From Sminthopsis crassicaudata (lineage: Eukaryota): DNA of 64,000 nt. The stretch lies in assembly GCF_048593235.1 (NCBI RefSeq), contig NC_133618.1:683190361-683254360 (forward strand), written 5' to 3'. A program made the translations under genes and the position numbers. This document shows, piece by piece, positions 3,700-44,388 of this stretch; the first letter of the stretch is position 1, and the number at the start of each line of letters is the position of its first letter. The notes beneath the pieces were generated by a model. It worked only from the letters and a program-made list of their open reading frames with translations, had not been told where the DNA came from and searched no databases.

Positions 3700-6300
3700 C
3701 TCCCAGGGAGGGCGGGAAGTCTGAGGCTACTCTACCCCCCCCCCCAAAGTCCTGCTATCGCCTCCCATCGCATGGGGCTCCGGCAGCGACCACCCACCCA
3801 GCTCCTCCCCCCAGCCTCCAGCCCCGGGAACTCAGAGGAGCCTCGGTTTCTCCAGGTCCCTGCCTCCAGCTACCCGCGCTCCGTGGCTTTCCCAGCCCAG
3901 CTTACCCTAAATTCCGCAGCGCTCACGCAAAGGGGATTTTCCAGGCAGGGGAGGAGCCCCATTGCCCTGCGCTCCCCCCTTTCCATTAATAATAAAGAAG
4001 TGGAGCTCAGAAAGCCCTCGGCACTTGTCGTCCTCTCCCATCCCACAGCTCCACATAGACCAGCCGTGTGTCTGGTTTCGGGCCGGCTCTCAGGGAAGGG
4101 ACGCCACGTATCCAAGGTCACCCCATCCCAGGGCCAGAGTCCCCGGGCTCGGGAGCTTTCCGTCCCCGCTCCTAAGACTTGCAGAGACCTGGGGGAGACT
4201 TGGGGGAGACCAGGGGCTCCCGCTCGGCCTGAGGCTCTTCCCCAGGCCCCGAGGTAAGCCCCTCCCCCAGCTCCCGGTGCCTCCGCCGCAGGGGACCGGA
4301 TGATTCACCGCCATTAGTCAGGGCAGATAGGGGAATCACCTCCCGCGGCGGCCGCGAGGTTTTGGGTTACTCAGGACGCCGGCTCAACCTTCCCTGAAAA
4401 GTGCAGCCCTCCCCCTCCTTTGGGTGGTCGGCGTAGACGCCCCGCGTCCCCCAAGCCTCAGTCCCTGACCCCCAAGCGGGAGGCCCGAGCCCTGGCTGGG
4501 CGGCTGGGTCCCCGAACTCCGGGCCGCCGCCTTCCGCGTTTCGGAGCGAAATGAGAACTTGGACCGACCGGGTGGCCCCGGGGCCGAGCTTCGGGGAGTC
4601 CGAGCGCTGACCCCGAGTGAGAGCCGAGCCGCCTGGCAGGACGCTTGTAGAAGAGCCGGCGGTCAAGGTGGCTCCCGAGAGCCCAGGGAAACCGGCAAAG
4701 GTCAAGGCTCCCTCCCGCCACATGGGCTGGGGGCTGCGCAGGGGAGGGAAGCGCTCTCGGGGGAGCCCCCAGATCGCAGCGCCTTCTCCCCCGACACACC
4801 CGCGCTCCGGGAAGCGGGAAGTTCGCCCGGCCGCCCCCAGGCTCCCACCCCGGAGAGGTGCCGGGGTCCCGCCTGACTCACTTCCCTTCACCAAAGCCTG
4901 GGGGCCAAACCTCCCCGAGCGCCCGAGCCTCGGACCCGTCGGACGGGACGCGTTCCGGGACCAGCCTGGAGACGCCGGGATCCCTCCCAGGACCCGGGCG
5001 GCGATCCGGCCCCGGCCCGAGCCGGGCGAGGGCGCCGGGTAAACAGCCCGCGAAGCGCGGCGAGCGTGCTCCCTCCGGCCTGAGCGGCCGGCCCCCAGCT
5101 CCGCTGCCCCTCACTCACCGGGGAGCCCCGGGGCGCCGCGCGGGCTCAGGAAGAACGCCCACAGGAGCCCCAGAAGGCAGCGGCGGCCGCACATGGTCCC
5201 GGCTCTGACCCGGCGGGAGCGGAACTGGGCACGGTCCCAGGTCGGCCGACGCTCCACCCCCGTGCTCCCGGGCTGCGAGGGGGCGGTGCTCCCCTCCCTC
5301 CCCTTCCTCTGGTTTCCTCCTCCGCCCTGTTAGAGTTCAGGGGCTCAGGTGGATGCCAAATGTGGCCGGCCGTGGGTGGGCGTCCCGTCCGCTTCAGCTC
5401 CAGCGCAGAGGGAAGTTCTGGACGCTGGCGGCGAGTTCTCCTGCCTCCTTGGCAGCAGGCTTTCTCAAGGCTGAAATGGCTGGGGAAGCCCCCCAGGTGT
5501 TCAGAGGGACTCTCTGCGCCCCCCCCCCCCCACGCCAGAGCTTTCCCACCCGCCACTGATCGGACAGCCACGCTCAGGACCGGACCGGAACTCCGGCCGT
5601 CGCTGAAGCGCTGGCCAGGGACGCCCACCTGGACGATGCGATTGTCACTTGCCAGCTCAGGGAGGGGGAGGCTCCCAAGGAAAGTGGGGGCCGGGCGAGG
5701 CCCCCAGACGGAGAGGCCTCCTTAGCGAAGCCTGCCAAATCTGCCCCACGCCCGACGGAATCGCTGCCCGGGGGGGCGCGGCTCCCTCACGCGGGCCACG
5801 GGGCTTGAATTCGAGATGGGCCTTTGCGGAAACGGCGATTTTAGGGAGAACTCACGCAGGTTAAGAGCTCCCAAGAAGGTCCCCCAAAGTGGCCACTCTC
5901 GAGGTCTGGAGAGCTCTAAAGCTCTCGGGAGCTTCTCGGAGTTCGGGGACCCAGGGGAGACCCTGGCCCAGGACCGCCCGGACGGCGAGCCCTCCCCGGG
6001 GAAGGGGTGTGCTCCGGGAGCAAAGCTGAGTGGAAGGGGCCCAGGAGAAACCCCCAACGTGGCCACAGTAACTCTGGGGACCGAACAGCCAGCTCACGGC
6101 CCCGGGCAGGAACCGCCGCCAGACCCTCCTTTCCAGGTCCCCTGGCTGGGGCGCGGCGGCCGGGCTCAGCCCCAGAGGGAAAATAGGGGCCAGCTGGGAG
6201 CCCGCCCCTTCCTGGGAGGGGCGGGAGGGCCCGGCCCGGGAGATGACTTTTACCTGAGGTAGTCTCGCCCCTCCGGGAGTCTCACTGACTAATGCCCGGG
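3700..6300. promoter_or_regulatory. CpG island around the putative signal-peptide exon
   Basis: high GC and dense CpG by inspection; contains the ATG exon at 5119-5194. Confidence 0.6.
5119..5194 (-). CDS. putative first coding exon encoding a signal peptide (MCGRRCLLGLLWAFFLSPRGAPGLP); ADAM8 candidate by synteny only
   Basis: gggaccATG start, 76 nt, basic N-region plus hydrophobic core, consensus G|gtgagt phase-1 donor; same strand as TUBGCP2 and downstream of it, as ADAM8 is in human; no ADAM8 exon 2 recognised in 1-5118. Confidence 0.45.
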
Positions 6301-38700: not shown

Positions 38701-40359
38701 AGACCGGAAGCAGGAAGAGTTCTGGGCAAAAAGGTGACCCTAGGGAAGGGGCCGGCTGGCGGACGACCCCCAAGAGGCTCCTCTCCCTGCCCAAGGCCGG
38801 CTTCCCTCCCCCGGGCCTGGTCCTTCCTGCGCTCTCGCCCCCTCGGGGGCGCCCTCCCAGCTATCGGGGCCACAGGCCCCTCTCCCTCCTCCCTCCGCGG
38901 TTAAGCTTTCTGCCAGCTGCCCTCGCCGGCCAGGACGCGCCCGCGGCCCCATTCTCGGGGCTCCCAGGGAGGAGCCGCACAGAGACCGAGCCCACCTGCT
39001 GCAAGCTGGGGCCGGTGGCCACGCTGCCCAGCTGCTTGCGCAGCTCCTCCAGCTCCTGCATGGAGATCTTGGACGCCGCCGCGGGGACGCTGAAGTGGGG
39101 GCCGCTGCTCGCGGCCGCGCCGGCGGCCAGCTCGGCCCGCTCCTTGGCGTTCTGCTGCAGGTACTGCAGCGTCTGAAACACCGGCACGCCGTCGGGCCCC
39201 GGTGATTTCCGATGGGCCCGCCGCCCACGGGAAAAGGGGGGTCGGGGCCGCCCGCGCTCCCGCAGGGAGGACGCCCCCCGTCTCCCACACGCGGGGGAGC
39301 CCGGGCGCAGACGGGGAGGGCGCGCCCTGCTGGGGGGCCGGGGTCTCCTGCCCTGCGCCCACGCCCCGGGGAGCCGGGCTGTCCCGAGGCCGCTACCTCT
39401 CTGTCCTCCGTGAGCTTCGCCAGGAGGTAGACCAGGGGGTCGAGGTTCCGGGCGTTCTTCGATTTCAGCTCATCGTACTTTTTCAGGAAATCCTCGGGAG
39501 TCCGGGAAAATTCTGCTATTTTAACCTGGGGGCACGGCAGCCGTCAGCGCCGCCCAAAGGGAGCCGGTCCAGACCCACAGAGGCCACTTGGTGAGCGCTA
39601 GAGGGAAGCTGGCGGAGCTCGGGTCTCTGCCGGGCCAGCGCGGACGGAGACCCGGGCCCCGGGGCAGCGCCGACAGCGGGGGGGCTCCGGCTTCCCAAAG
39701 CCTGGGGGGTCTCACCTCACCACAGCCCTTGGGGGAGTGGGGGGGACCTCGAACCCAGGGCTTCCAGCCCCCCTCCCCCACAGCTGCCTTTCTTCAGAGG
39801 GGTTACAGAGGACCCAAGGCTGGGCGCCGTGAGAAGTGCCAGGGCCTGATGGGGGGCAGGGCCCGAGGGCCGGTGGGGGGCAGGGCCCTGGGGCCCGGTG
39901 GGGGGCAGGGCACTGTGGGCCCGGTGGGGGGCAGGGCCCTGTGAGCCTGATGGGGGGCAGGGCCCTGGGAGCCCGGTGGGGGGCAGGGCCCTCGGAGCCC
40001 GGTGGGGGGGGGGGGGGCAGGGCACTGGGAGCCCGGTGGGGGGGGGGGCAGGGCACTGGGAGCCCGGTGGGGGGCAGGGCACTGGGGCCCGGTGGGGGGC
40101 AGGGCACTGTGAGCCTGATGGGGGGCAGGGCCTGAGGGCCGGTGGGGGGCAGGGCCCTGGGGCCCGGTGGGGGGCAGGGCCCTGGGGCCCGGTGGGGGGC
40201 AGGGCCCACCTTGGCGCTGTGCGCGGACACGGTGGTGGTGACGTAGGGGGTCCGGTTCTTCTGCAGCAGGTCGATGTAGACCTCGGCCCCGTCGCCCCCA
40301 TGCACGCGCAGCAGGCTCAGCAGCTCGTTCACGTCGTGGTGAATCCGGAACTCGCTCAT
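32739..40359 (-). CDS. TUBGCP2: gamma-tubulin complex component 2, 897 aa, 17 coding exons
   Basis: GT-AG exons with consistent phases: 40210-40359, 39397-39525, 38996-39172, 38305-38464, 37694-37901, 36930-37129, 36415-36604, 36169-36314, 35310-35490, 34957-35137, 34612-34784, 34247-34375, 33970-34090, 33742-33885, 33522-33650, 33241-33404, 32739-32850 (2694 nt); translation MSEFRIHHDVNELLSLLRVHGG...LDFNGFYTERLERLSAE matches GCP2. Confidence 0.98.
39840..40205. repeat. G-rich ~25-bp minisatellite in the intron after the first TUBGCP2 coding exon
   Basis: unit ggggcccggtggggggcagggccct with variants; abuts the donor at 40209. Confidence 0.9.
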
Positions 40360-40779
40360 GGCTGAGCTGAGGGAGAACTCCAGGAACGTTTGTGAAGGGG
40401 GGCTGAGGGTTCTGGGCTCCGGGCGCTTCCAGGAAGCGGCCCAGACAACCCTCCCCCACAAGGCGCCCCCAAAGGAGCCTCGGAAGGGGCCGCAGGACCC
40501 CGAGGTCCGAGGGAGCTGGGGCTGCCCCGGGAGGGAGGGAGGCGCTGTCCGCGGTCCTGGAGGAGCTGTCCAGGGTCCGAGGGAGGGGGAGGAGGAGGAG
40601 GAGCTGCCCTGGCGGGGAGGGGAAAGAGGAGGGGCCGGCGGCCTCCCGTGTCCCAGCGGGGATTCCGTCCGGCCCGGCTAGCGCGCGCCAGGGACTGGGG
40701 GGCGGGGCAGGGAAAGAGCGTCTCCAGCCCCGTTCCGAGGCCGCCGATCCCGGGGCCACAGACACCGAACTAATTTAGG

Positions 40780-41045
40780 GCGCGAGACCGGAAGTTCTCC
40801 AGCGCTTACCGGCACGCGGGACAGAGACGCTCCGACCCGGACCCGCCCGCGGGGGGAGGGGGGGTCCTCTCCTCACTCACCCGGCCGCGGCGCTCCCTTC
40901 TAGTGCCGGTCGGCTCCCGCCTCCGGCTCAGGCACGACCCGGAAGTTGTTCTTGGGCCGGAAGTGACATCACGAGCCTTTCCCTCCCGCCTCCGGGCTCC
41001 GACCCGCCCGGAGGCACAGTTGGGGGGGGAAAAAAGTACAGAAAA
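40780..41045. promoter_or_regulatory. bidirectional TUBGCP2/ZNF511 promoter, including the TUBGCP2 non-coding exon 1
   Basis: three ETS/GABP-type CCGGAAGT motifs (40788-40795, 40939-40946, 40957-40964); minus-strand gtaag donor at 40805-40809; head-to-head genes. Confidence 0.8.
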
Positions 41046-44000
41046 ATGGAGCGGCCCCCGGGGCTGCTGATCCTCCCAGGCCCAGGCTCGGCCTGGCGAT
41101 ATCCTCCGGGTCACCCCCTCCCCCCCAGCTACCCGTGCTTCACCTGGCTGCCGTGGCCACCCCTTCCCGCTTCGTGCCTCCGAGCCCCGAGCCTACGCTG
41201 GGACAGCGACTGTTTGAGGTCACGTGGTTTCAGAGCTGGGCTAGGCTGAGGGGCGGGATCTGGGGCGGGCACTAAAGTGAGATGGGCAGAGTTTGAAGTG
41301 AAACTAAGGCAACGGTGGAGCCTTGGCTTGAGACTTAGGCAGAGAGGCGGGAACTAATCGTTGAGAGACAGGTGGAAAGGAGAGGTCTGTGGTGAGAGAC
41401 AGGCGGAGAGGCGGGGCCTACGGTGAGAGACAGGTGGAGAGGCGAGGTCTGTGGTGAGAGACAGGCAGAGAGGTGGGGCCTACGGTGAGAGACTAGGCGG
41501 AGAGGGGAGGTCTGTGGTGAGAGACAGGCGGAGAGGCGGGGCCTACGGTGAGAGACAGGCAGCGGGGCGGGTTTATGGTGAGAGACAGGTGGAGAGGCGG
41601 GGCCTACCGTGAGAGACAGGCAGCTGGGCGGGTTTATGGTGAGGGACAGGCGGGGAGGCGGGGCCTACGGTGAGAGACAGGCCGCGGGGCGGGTTTATGG
41701 TGAGAGACAGGCAGAGAGGCGGGGCCTACGGTGAGAGACAGGCAGCGGGGCGGGCTTATGGTGAGGAAAAAGCGGGGAGGCGGAGTGTGCGGGCAGACTG
41801 CGGCGAAGAGGCGGGGTTTGCGGGCAGACTGAGGCGGAGAGGCGGGGTCTGCGGCCAGACTGAGGCGGAGAGGCGGGGTTTGCGGGGGGTGGGCAGGGTG
41901 TGGGAGGTAAGAAAAAGGTTCGTCTGAGAAAAAGGTTCGTCATCGTCGCGGTGATCGGGGCTCGGTCCGCATCGCTGGTCGCGCCCTCCTCGGCCCTGCG
42001 CTTTCCAGGATGGGGACCCTACGAGACACTCTGAGCACCCGAAGGTTGTCTCGGCGTCCGCCCGGGGAGGGGAAGCCGCGCGGGGTCCGGCTCCTCGGGC
42101 TCCGCCGCGGCTCGCGGCGGGTCCGCGGAGGGTCTGGGCGATGGGCGGCGGAGGGGCGGCCGATGAGCCGGCGGGCGGCGGGAGGAGACGGGGCTAGCGA
42201 GCGGCTCTCCCCGCAGGGTGCCCGCCTACTGCTGCCACATCGGAGGCTGCGACCGGGTGTTCGACTCCCTGCCGGGCTACGTGCGTCACTACCAGACGCT
42301 GCACCAGAACGCGTGCTCCTTCTGCCGCCGCTCGTTCCCCTCGGACCAGCTGCTGGACATCCACCTCCTGGAGCGCCACGGCACCGTGCCGTCCTCGCCC
42401 ACCCGGGCGGCGGCCGCGCGCGAGCGCCGCCCCATCCCCTTCTACTACCAGTGCCCGGTGTGGGGCTGCACCGACAAGTTCATGAGCCCCGAGGAGCAGA
42501 CGGACCATCTGATCCGCATCCACCACTACCCCGCCCATCTCTGGTTCGACTCGCCCCCCGACAACCAGAGGTAGGGGGGCGGGCGACCCCTGGGGCAGTG
42601 CGCAGAGCAGCCCGGAGACCGTTCGGGGAGCGGGAGAGGAGGGAGGTGGTCGGCTATTATGGGGGATCCGAGGGGGGGAGCGGGAGAGGGTGGGGGCGGG
42701 GAGGACGGGAGGTGGTCGTCCTCGCTGGGATAAATAGGGGGTGGGGTAGCGCAGGGAGGCGGTCGATCATTATTGGGGACGGATGGAGAGCGGAGAAAGG
42801 ACGCCCATCGTTCTGGGGACGGATGGAAGCGGGAGAGGAGGGATGTCGATCATTATCGGACGGACGGGGAAGGGGGAGTGCGGAGAGGAGGGGGAGGCTG
42901 ATCACTGCGGGGATAGATGAGGTGGGGGAAAGAGGAGGGAGGGAGGAGGGGCGGAGGCCGAGCAGAGCCGGAGGGGGCGGGGGCGACGAGGAGAGCGAGG
43001 GGAGGGGGGGTCGATGGGGAGGGGTGGGGGGGAGGGGCGGGGAGGGGCGGCGGACATCCGGGCCCGAGCTCGTTCGGAGGACGCCAGAGGGGCGTCATCG
43101 GTGAGGGGGGGGCTGCAGGGCTCTCACGCCCCAGTCCCTCTCCTCTGCAGTTCCGGCCAGCAGGGCTCTGCATCCTCGGCCTCGGCCTCCGCGGGGTCCG
43201 CCTCCGAGGCTTCTGCTAAGGAATCGGCCTCCGCCTCCGCGTCCGCATCCGCGGCCTCCGCCGCGGCGGCCTCCGCCCCCCAGGGCGCTGGGGTGGGAGG
43301 AGGAGCAGGCGGGGACAGTGGCCAGGAGCCGGAGGAGGCCATGGAGGAGACCGTGGAGGAGGAGGCTGAGGAGGAGCCGGTGGACGAGACTGAGGACGAA
43401 CCGGACGAGGAGCCCATGGGGGAGGAGGACATGGGGGAGGACGAGGAGGACCCCGAGTCGGAGGCTGGCAGCGACCCCGAGCCCCCTGAGGATGACATCT
43501 CCAGCCTCAGGTCAGCCGCCCGGGAGAGCGGAGTGGGACGGCCGGACACTCCCCGGCGGGAAGCCTTCTCACTGTTCCACACCCCCCACCCCGAGCCTGC
43601 GCTAGAGACACACTTAACAAAAGCGCCCACCCAGACGGGGAGGGGCCGCGGCTCCTCCAACCACACCTAGGGAGGGGGCCGGCTCCGGCCAGTAAAGGCA
43701 AACTGAGGCACACGGAGATCCCCCAGCCAGTCTGAGGGAACTTGCCCCCCCCCCCCCTTGGATCTCAGCACACGTTTCCCAGCCTTCCCCCTGCTTGGGG
43801 GCCGACTCTCTGGGGATAAAGCTTAGCTGCATCCGTGCTCAGGGAGGAGAGGGACGGCACCTTGGCCCCGGCTGGCCAGCGGAGGGCGTCTCCATGGCCC
43901 TGGCCGGGCGCTGGGAGGCCGGTGTTCCTTAGAGACCCTGCTTCCCCGCGCTTTCTCAGTGTAGAAGGGGCCCTGGGCAGGCTGAGGGCAAGGGGGGGGG

Positions 44001-44388
44001 GAACATGAGGGAGCAGGCTCAGCTGGCGGGCTCCTGCGGAGGAGGGTCTGTTCCCTCAGGGACGGAGACAAGGCCGGGCCCTCCTGAACGGGAGAACGGG
44101 GCACAGGTCTCAGGAGGGCAGTGGGAGCTCCCAGGCCTGGGAGGCCCACTGAGGCGGCAGAGAGCAGGACCGTGCCAGAGGCCCTCCCCGCCCTGGGCAG
44201 CCCCCGACTGGCACGAGCGCCATCTGGAGGGGGGGGGCAGGCCTCTAAGCCCCCGAGCCGTGGGCGAGGGGTCTCGAGTGTCACGCTCACCCCAGTCTGC
44301 TTTTCATTCCAGCGTCCCTGCACTTGCCTTTGGCCCCGGGGCGGCCGGCGGATTCGACAGTGCAGAGGAAAGTAACGAGGACCACTGA
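41046..44388 (+). CDS. ZNF511: divergent zinc finger protein 511, 332 aa, 5 coding exons
   Basis: exons 41046-41218, 42009-42044, 42217-42570, 43151-43510, 44313-44388 (999 nt, open); three C2H2-type fingers (CHIGGC..HYQTLH, CSFC..HLLERH, CPVWGC..HLIRIH) and terminal VPALAFGPGAAGGF match ZNF511; head-to-head with TUBGCP2 as in human. The first donor (gtcacg) is weak; the ATG at 42010 is an alternative start. Confidence 0.8.
41365..41880. repeat. 31-bp minisatellite (then a shorter ~27-30-bp variant) in ZNF511 intron 1
   Basis: unit ggtgagagacaggcggagaggcggggcctac, ~12-13 copies. Confidence 0.9.

Follow-up and report, generated by a model that had tools for sequence, protein, structure and literature searches.

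A probable change of start codon and reading frame at the 5' end of marsupial ZNF511, with a later exon-1 deletion in the fat-tailed dunnart

By which start codon, and in which frame, are the zinc fingers of ZNF511 reached in the fat-tailed dunnart, Sminthopsis crassicaudata? The question arises from a 64,000-nucleotide (nt) stretch of this species' genome (RefSeq assembly GCF_048593235.1, contig NC_133618.1, forward-strand positions 683,190,361 to 683,254,360), hereafter the window, in which all positions below are counted. The frame that resembles ZNF511 of other vertebrates, ..QRLFE/DGDPTRHSEHPK (a slash within a sequence marks an exon junction), has no ATG. An ATG at 41046 opens another frame which, if exon 2 is included, meets the zinc-finger frame exactly (173+36+1 = 210 nt), the G that begins exon 3 being the third base of a codon. 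A preliminary description of the locus had reported both facts, together with the exon boundaries (exon 1, 41046-41218; exon 2, 42009-42044; exon 3 from 42217), and inspection of the sequence proved it correct on each. It interpreted the arrangement as the work of two compensating 1-nt indels, yielding either a frameshift-derived N-terminus or a truncated one, and allowed for a pair of assembly errors. The history that we favor, and that we regard as quite probable when taken as a whole, is a different one: a switch of start codon and frame common to all marsupials, followed by an exon-1 deletion found in the dunnart only. No assembly error is needed to explain the feature, which is real and not an artifact.

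Exon 2 and the translated start of marsupial ZNF511

The feature in the window is the 5' end of dunnart ZNF511. Compared singly by reference, and not as a joined spliced model, its exons are 100% identical to those of the two RefSeq isoforms of the species. Isoform X1 (XP_074153332.1, 320 amino acids, MERPPG...SDCLR/VPAYCC) splices the open reading frame (ORF) of ATG 41046 straight to exon 3, skipping exon 2; isoform X2 (XP_074153333.1, 274 amino acids) begins MGTLRDTLSTRR/VPAYCC from an ATG at 42010. Both alternatives put forward in the preliminary description, the long N-terminus and the short one, already exist as public RefSeq gene models. A protein joining exons 1, 2 and 3 has no counterpart among the proteins found, no joined spliced model having been searched, and the protein clusters retrieved held no further transcript evidence for the dunnart.

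The gene has the attributes of a ZNF511 orthologue, namely the zinc-finger core, a position beside TUBGCP2 and identity to the species' annotated protein. Exon 3 alone gave 183 matches at E<=1e-10 in a representative search, the closest ones followed up being named ZNF511, and its Pfam matches (zf-C2H2_4, zf-C2H2 and DUF7565) place a ZNF511-homologous C2H2 core in it. One primate-like protein (P0010) was also returned by the search; it had no part in the comparisons below, nor did any contig taken to be human. The N-terminal motif ..FFEDGDxxRHLYLQD.. is absent from the translated product and survives only as a DNA relic, in a frame unable to reach exon 3. This is no argument against orthology, since the motif is untranslated in all marsupials examined and its absence is a derived state of the clade.

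The origin of this state is to be sought in exon 2. We compared the genomic loci of 11 marsupial species, nine Australidelphia and two didelphids (Monodelphis and Gracilinanus), in an alignment of the kind that the preliminary description had suggested; exon 2 turned out to be shared and exon 1 to be decaying. A GT donor closes exon 2 in all 11 species, the exon being 36 nt long and ending AAG/gt in 9/9 Australidelphia, and 33 nt long and ending CAG/gtgagc in 2/2 didelphids. In a sauropsid outgroup (locus L012, protein P0005), exon 1 runs from its ATG to ..FFE/ and ends in phase 0 (TTC TTT GAG/gt). Exon 2 of the outgroup is 74 nt long (GAT GGA GAC ... TCC AA/gtaagt, encoding DGDxxRHLYLQD..), with two bases over, and exon 3 begins ag/G GTG. 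The exon-2 acceptor and the phase of the exon-1 donor are those of marsupials. Moreover, the marsupial 36-nt exon is colinear, codon for codon, with the first 12 codons of the sauropsid exon, and the marsupial AAG/GT is located where the sauropsid reads CAA GAT. The frame problem thus comes from a new donor and not from a 1-nt insertion near 42043. The -1 indel that the preliminary description had placed there has no room in an exon colinear with the first 36 of the 74 sauropsid nucleotides, and the match between EHPK and EKPR that it cited is judged coincidental. To go by the alignment, marsupial exon 2 looks like the product of a new internal donor gained before the living marsupials diverged.

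A search of the window by eye found no other exon-2 donor or exon-3 acceptor of the right phase to keep the old frame. One protein with a longer exon 2 (P0002, UPI0001B20C09, ..HPKVVAALPGKP/VPAY) was considered as a survival of that frame in a marsupial and set aside: it is an old unnamed archive entry, it is encoded by no contig, and a stop interrupts the read-through concerned in the current wallaby genome.

In the old frame, exon 2 of the dunnart reads DGDPTRHSEHPK; from ATG 42010, that is, in the +1 frame of the ancestral DGDxxRH codons, it reads MGTLRDTLSTR(R). With its 36 nt, the exon leads the +1 frame into exon 3 but not the old one; translation would accordingly begin at this ATG, which is embedded in GAT-GGG. 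Its context is strong (A at -3, G at +4), as the preliminary description had stated. The ATG predates the switch, being present in the +1 frame of the sauropsid (G ATG GAG) too. RefSeq forms starting MGTLRDTLSTRR/VPAY are available from Trichosurus, Notamacropus, Vombatus, Phascolarctos, Dromiciops, Macrotis, Antechinus and Sminthopsis. Those of Monodelphis and Gracilinanus start MGTLRDTLNTR/MPAY, and in Sarcophilus the sequence MGTLRDTL(S/N)TR sits inside a longer UniProt model (A0A7N4PVG2).

The substitutions in exon 2, mapped on the accepted marsupial tree, tell the two frames apart. Read in the MGTL frame, they comprise 12 synonymous changes, one amino-acid change (S/N) and one whole-codon indel; in the DGD frame, a single synonymous change stands against 12 amino-acid changes. 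(An 'F>L' entry in the substitution output is an artifact of the background codon chosen.) With one third of the possible changes synonymous here, the binomial probability of at least 12 synonymous changes in 13 is P = 1.7e-5. Purifying selection maintains the 12-residue MGTL peptide, acting on the new frame and not on the old, a pattern that distinguishes frame overprinting. Thus, of the two outcomes offered by the preliminary description, truncation holds as the conserved form, although replacement is the better word, and the frameshift-derived N-terminus exists only as the predicted isoform X1 of the dunnart.

Constraint also marks the DNA directly upstream of ATG 42010. A marsupial-specific element in this position (Table 1) is 90-94% identical to most other Australidelphia, 69% to the bilby and about 80% to the didelphids, whereas exon 1 reaches only 45-54% in marsupials outside the dasyurids. 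Within the element, AAAAAGGTTCGTC occurs twice as a direct repeat, and AGGTAAGA is invariant. The sauropsid intron has no such element, and an Rfam search of 40700-42700 gave no matches. The element is likely to be the 5' untranslated region or the core promoter of the main transcript. A 1455-nt opossum sequence (GCA_029782595.1, JARCCX010255276.1) is informative in this respect. It is made of four blocks 100% identical to the Monodelphis genome, with the introns removed, and ends just past AATAAA. The 5' end of the first block, 146 nt before the ATG, falls inside former intron 1, and the contig includes the opossum counterpart of the element; exon-1 sequence is absent. Though filed in a genome-assembly record, this is a cDNA-like sequence or a very recent retrocopy of the Monodelphis ZNF511 mRNA. 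Between 41758 and 42010 the window lacks any ATG; a conserved TAA in frame with ATG 42010 precedes it by 33 codons. Former intron 1 is the probable site of the main transcript's start, as observed in the opossum and, by extension, expected in the dunnart. In the bilby (Macrotis lagotis, locus L008, about 4997-4999), the exon-2 acceptor reads CGG in place of CAG; with GG instead of AG, exon 1 cannot be spliced to exon 2 at the ancestral site in this species.

One could envision the following course of events. Before the living marsupials diverged, as the state they share suggests, a GT donor would have arisen inside exon 2 after 36 nt (33 in didelphids). The protein would have become MGTLRDTLSTRR joined to the zinc fingers, with the formerly conserved motif now read in the new frame, and the start of the main transcript would have moved into former intron 1. 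Exon 1 would have persisted as an alternative first exon, free of coding constraint. Finally, a 1-nt deletion at 41152/41153 in the Sminthopsis lineage would have put the intact old ATG 41046 into the zinc-finger frame, giving the predicted isoform X1. The likely trigger is the splice-donor shift, the start codon being already latent in the D-G codons.

Exon 1 and the dunnart deletion

In the dunnart, the ORF of ATG 41046 (MERPPG...WDSDCL) remains open for 57 codons plus 2 nt, up to the GAG/gt donor at 41218. A second frame, which lacks an ATG, reads ..ATPSRFVPPSPEPTLGQRLFE to the same donor; this is the only homologous part of that frame, the stretch QLPVLHLAAV not being homologous. Neither exon-1 frame gave a Pfam match. 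The fate of the exon elsewhere is varied. The ORF is open in Macrotis and Trichosurus, in the old frame and incompatible with exon 3; it is cut to seven codons in Antechinus and Sarcophilus (MERPPGC, then a stop) and interrupted by in-frame stops in Notamacropus, Vombatus and Phascolarctos. Dromiciops has AAA instead of the ATG, which is also lost in Monodelphis. Among the species examined, only the dunnart has an exon-1 ORF that is both open and in the zinc-finger frame. Judged from these sequences, exon 1 is a decaying relic, retained as an alternative first exon without coding constraint. An E-box, GTCACGTGG, lies right at the exon-1 donor (41219-41227), is invariant but for one koala substitution and is found in Monodelphis as well. 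It may explain the lasting conservation of the 3' end of the relic exon.

The change of frame within dunnart exon 1 is not where the preliminary description had put it, in the C-run at 41120-41126, but at 41152/41153, outside any homopolymer (Table 1). The intact bilby ORF follows the dunnart ATG frame upstream of this point (..PPSRMCFATPP) and the other dunnart frame downstream of it (ARPFRFAPRGPEPAPGRLLVE). The break was placed by DNA alignment, protein-level scores against exon 1 of bilby, possum and sauropsid being too weak owing to low complexity. The N-terminus of X1 consequently combines about 36 residues in the ancestral frame with 22 in the new one. Isoforms joining exon 1 to exon 3 are also predicted in koala, wallaby and devil, and start at unrelated positions. 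We consider the apparent compensation in the dunnart most likely a neutral by-product of the deletion, which may yield a minor long isoform.

Several points weigh against this account and deserve to be set out together. For the dunnart, the transcription start and the use of the splice junctions are extrapolated from the opossum and from RefSeq models. As Gnomon predictions made by one shared method, the latter do not count as fully independent where they agree. A single dunnart assembly is the source of the 1-nt gap at 41152/41153. Transcription of exon 1 from upstream would bring ATG 41046 into use, its own context being strong (A at -3, G at +4), and the long form could then be a substantial product in the dunnart. 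Lastly, most of the variation in the final 30 nt of exon 1 falls on third codon positions of the old frame, a bias that we tentatively attribute to CpG mutation.

Some of these points lend themselves to a reading in which the Sminthopsis deletion reconnected the ancestral start, which had long been non-coding leader sequence, to the zinc-finger ORF, and a chimeric long isoform, with about 36 ancestral-frame residues and then 22-34 in the new frame, is substantial beside the MGTL form. We hold this to be unlikely, though worth keeping in mind. It is a further step, and an improbable one, to suppose that the deletion was selected because it restored a long N-terminal extension, with the 41046 isoform as the main functional product in Sminthopsis. 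In its favor are the strong start context, the prediction of X1 by Gnomon and the fact that, of the species examined, the dunnart alone combines an open ancestral ATG ORF with the zinc-finger frame. However, stops are few at 70% GC, about one third of open ORFs will be in the right frame by chance, and the state is seen in 1/9 species. The new-frame segment (WPPLPASCLRAPSLRWDSDCLR) is without a conserved counterpart, X1-type isoforms of koala, wallaby and devil have unrelated starting points, and both the MGTL start and the upstream element are still fully conserved in the dunnart.

The interpretation given in the preliminary description, two private 1-nt indels (41120-41126 and near 42043) forming a compensated frameshift, with the main protein running from 41046 through exons 1, 2 and 3, seems to us very improbable. 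The frame arithmetic does hold, ATG 41046 has a strong context and one RefSeq isoform (X1) uses its ORF. Yet Antechinus has a C-run of equal length, exon 2 measures 36 nt in all Australidelphia examined and colinear with the first 12 codons of the outgroup exon, and exon 1 is unconstrained in other marsupials; X1 skips exon 2, and no protein with the exon1-exon2-exon3 junction was found. A compensated frameshift consists of two indels, neither a multiple of three, in one lineage; here the first event would be a donor shift and only the second an indel. As for one or both frame changes being sequencing errors, the region is about 70% GC with homopolymers and the dunnart is represented by a single assembly, but the idea is hardly tenable when the exon-2 state is common to 11 independent assemblies and the opossum mRNA-like contig, which excludes an error there, and when the C-run matches Antechinus in length, which makes an error needless, and the 41152/41153 gap is not in a homopolymer.

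The surrounding locus

The start and frame switch favored here concerns a locus whose features are collected in Table 1. TUBGCP2 lies head-to-head with ZNF511, its first coding exon (MSEFRIHHDV..) being on the minus strand at about 40300-40460, and GCP-domain genes adjoin ZNF511 upstream in most of the marsupial loci fetched. The whole ZNF511 gene is embedded in DNA of about 70% GC. Repeats related to the minisatellite of former intron 1 also occur in Trichosurus. A second GC-rich minisatellite, with 25/31-nt units, is found at 40007-40205, downstream of the first coding exon of TUBGCP2, so that the pair flanks the shared promoter. In Sarcophilus, two models, P0157 (XP_031805266.1, 756 amino acids, named 'uncharacterized protein LOC100928937') and P0159 ('uncharacterized protein'), run through this promoter, where they render the ETS motifs as ..HDPEVVPGPEVTF..; the two have probably been extended too far.

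Other parts of the marsupial gene differ from the sauropsid one as well. Exon 3 spans two sauropsid exons, whose intron lies between ..QNM and YQC... In the stretch concerned (42380-42450) the 13 residues DSLFQIMAEKQNM are replaced by 22, GTVPSSPTRAAAARERRPIPFY, and the end of the latter consists of a pyrimidine-rich run and CAG, resembling a former acceptor. The marsupial C-terminal tail (44313-44388) is acidic (..AFGPGAAGGFDSAEESNEDH), and in the sauropsid and eutherian sequence seen it is basic, RIPSTICFGQGAxRGFKSxKKK.

Table 1. Features at the 5' end of dunnart ZNF511 and along the gene (window positions)
Position	Strand	Feature	Remarks
40938-40975		ETS-like motifs (CCGGAAGT, two copies) of the putative promoter shared with TUBGCP2	near-invariant in 9 Australidelphian species
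41046-41218	+	ancestral first coding exon, at present a relic and an alternative first exon	173 nt, GAG/gt; 100% identical to XP_074153332.1 residues 1-57
41120-41126	+	C7 run, frameshift site of the preliminary description	not the break; Antechinus of equal length across GTCACCCCCTC..CCCCAGCTAC, two substitutions, no indel
41152-41153	+	actual exon-1 frame break, 1-nt gap	GCTGCC-GTGG versus GCTGCCAG(G/A)GG in Antechinus, Sarcophilus and Macrotis
41337-41878		minisatellite of former intron 1, rich in GC, with a 31/61-nt period and GC-box-like GGGGCGGGG units	17.5 copies of the 31-nt unit
41905-42008	+	marsupial-specific conserved element directly 5' of ATG 42010	about 105 nt; recognized by cross-species identity
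42009-42044	+	exon 2	36 nt, cag/G...AAG/gt; 100% identical to the start of XP_074153333.1
42045-42216	+	intron 2	first ~38 nt presumably correspond to the 3' end of the ancestral exon 2 of 74 nt
42217-42570	+	exon 3, C2H2 zinc fingers	Pfam; identical to XP_074153332.1 save the first codon, taken for a start by the tool
43151-43511	+	exon 4, Ser/Ala-rich, then acidic	119/119 identical to XP_074153332.1
44313-44388	+	last coding exon, VPALAFGPGAAGGFDSAEESNEDH and stop	comparison with RefSeq isoforms

Significance and relation to known systems

The function of ZNF511 is poorly known, and the interest of the locus lies in what has become of its N-terminus. A motif conserved among vertebrates has been dropped in one mammalian clade. 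In its place the same nucleotides now supply, in a different frame, a short peptide that is constant across all living marsupial lineages examined. This explains why marsupial ZNF511 models look truncated, which is not a fault of annotation or assembly. The 'long isoforms' that begin in exon 1, in dunnart, koala, wallaby and devil alike, are each peculiar to their species and probably not conserved. Among the papers searched, none names ZNF511 together with marsupials; the gene models themselves are public, but the evolutionary account may not have appeared in print.

The closest comparison is with ZNF511 outside marsupials, as represented by the sauropsid locus and by eutherian sequences. The genes are alike in their position beside TUBGCP2, in the C2H2 core and in the positions of the exon-1 donor and exon-2 acceptor, and the DGDxxRH codons are still recognizable in marsupial DNA. 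In contrast to their counterparts, marsupials do not translate ..FFEDGDxxRHLYLQD.. and have the 12-residue +1-frame peptide instead; their exon 2 is 36 and not 74 nt long, their exon 3 corresponds to two outgroup exons, and their tail is acidic instead of basic. Within the dunnart, RefSeq isoforms X1 and X2 differ from the model of the preliminary description in that inclusion of exon 2 would add 12 residues to X1.

These properties invite analogies with overprinting and start-codon turnover, in which an out-of-frame ATG that was already present imposes a new frame on an existing coding stretch. The resemblance is close: nucleotides that once read DGDxxRH.. now read MGTLRDTL.., and their substitutions show selection in the new frame. 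Unlike overprinting with dual coding, however, the old frame has fallen into disuse in marsupials, which makes this a replacement, and the trigger would be a splice-donor shift rather than an indel. The dunnart also recalls the classical compensated frameshift, two nearby indels in one lineage, in that the stretch between two frame changes would be translated out of the ancestral frame, with the domain downstream preserved. In contrast to the classical case, the two events would belong to different branches, one preceding the divergence of marsupials and the other in the Sminthopsis lineage, and one of them would be a donor shift. By the time of the second, a conserved alternative start had already solved the problem of the frame.

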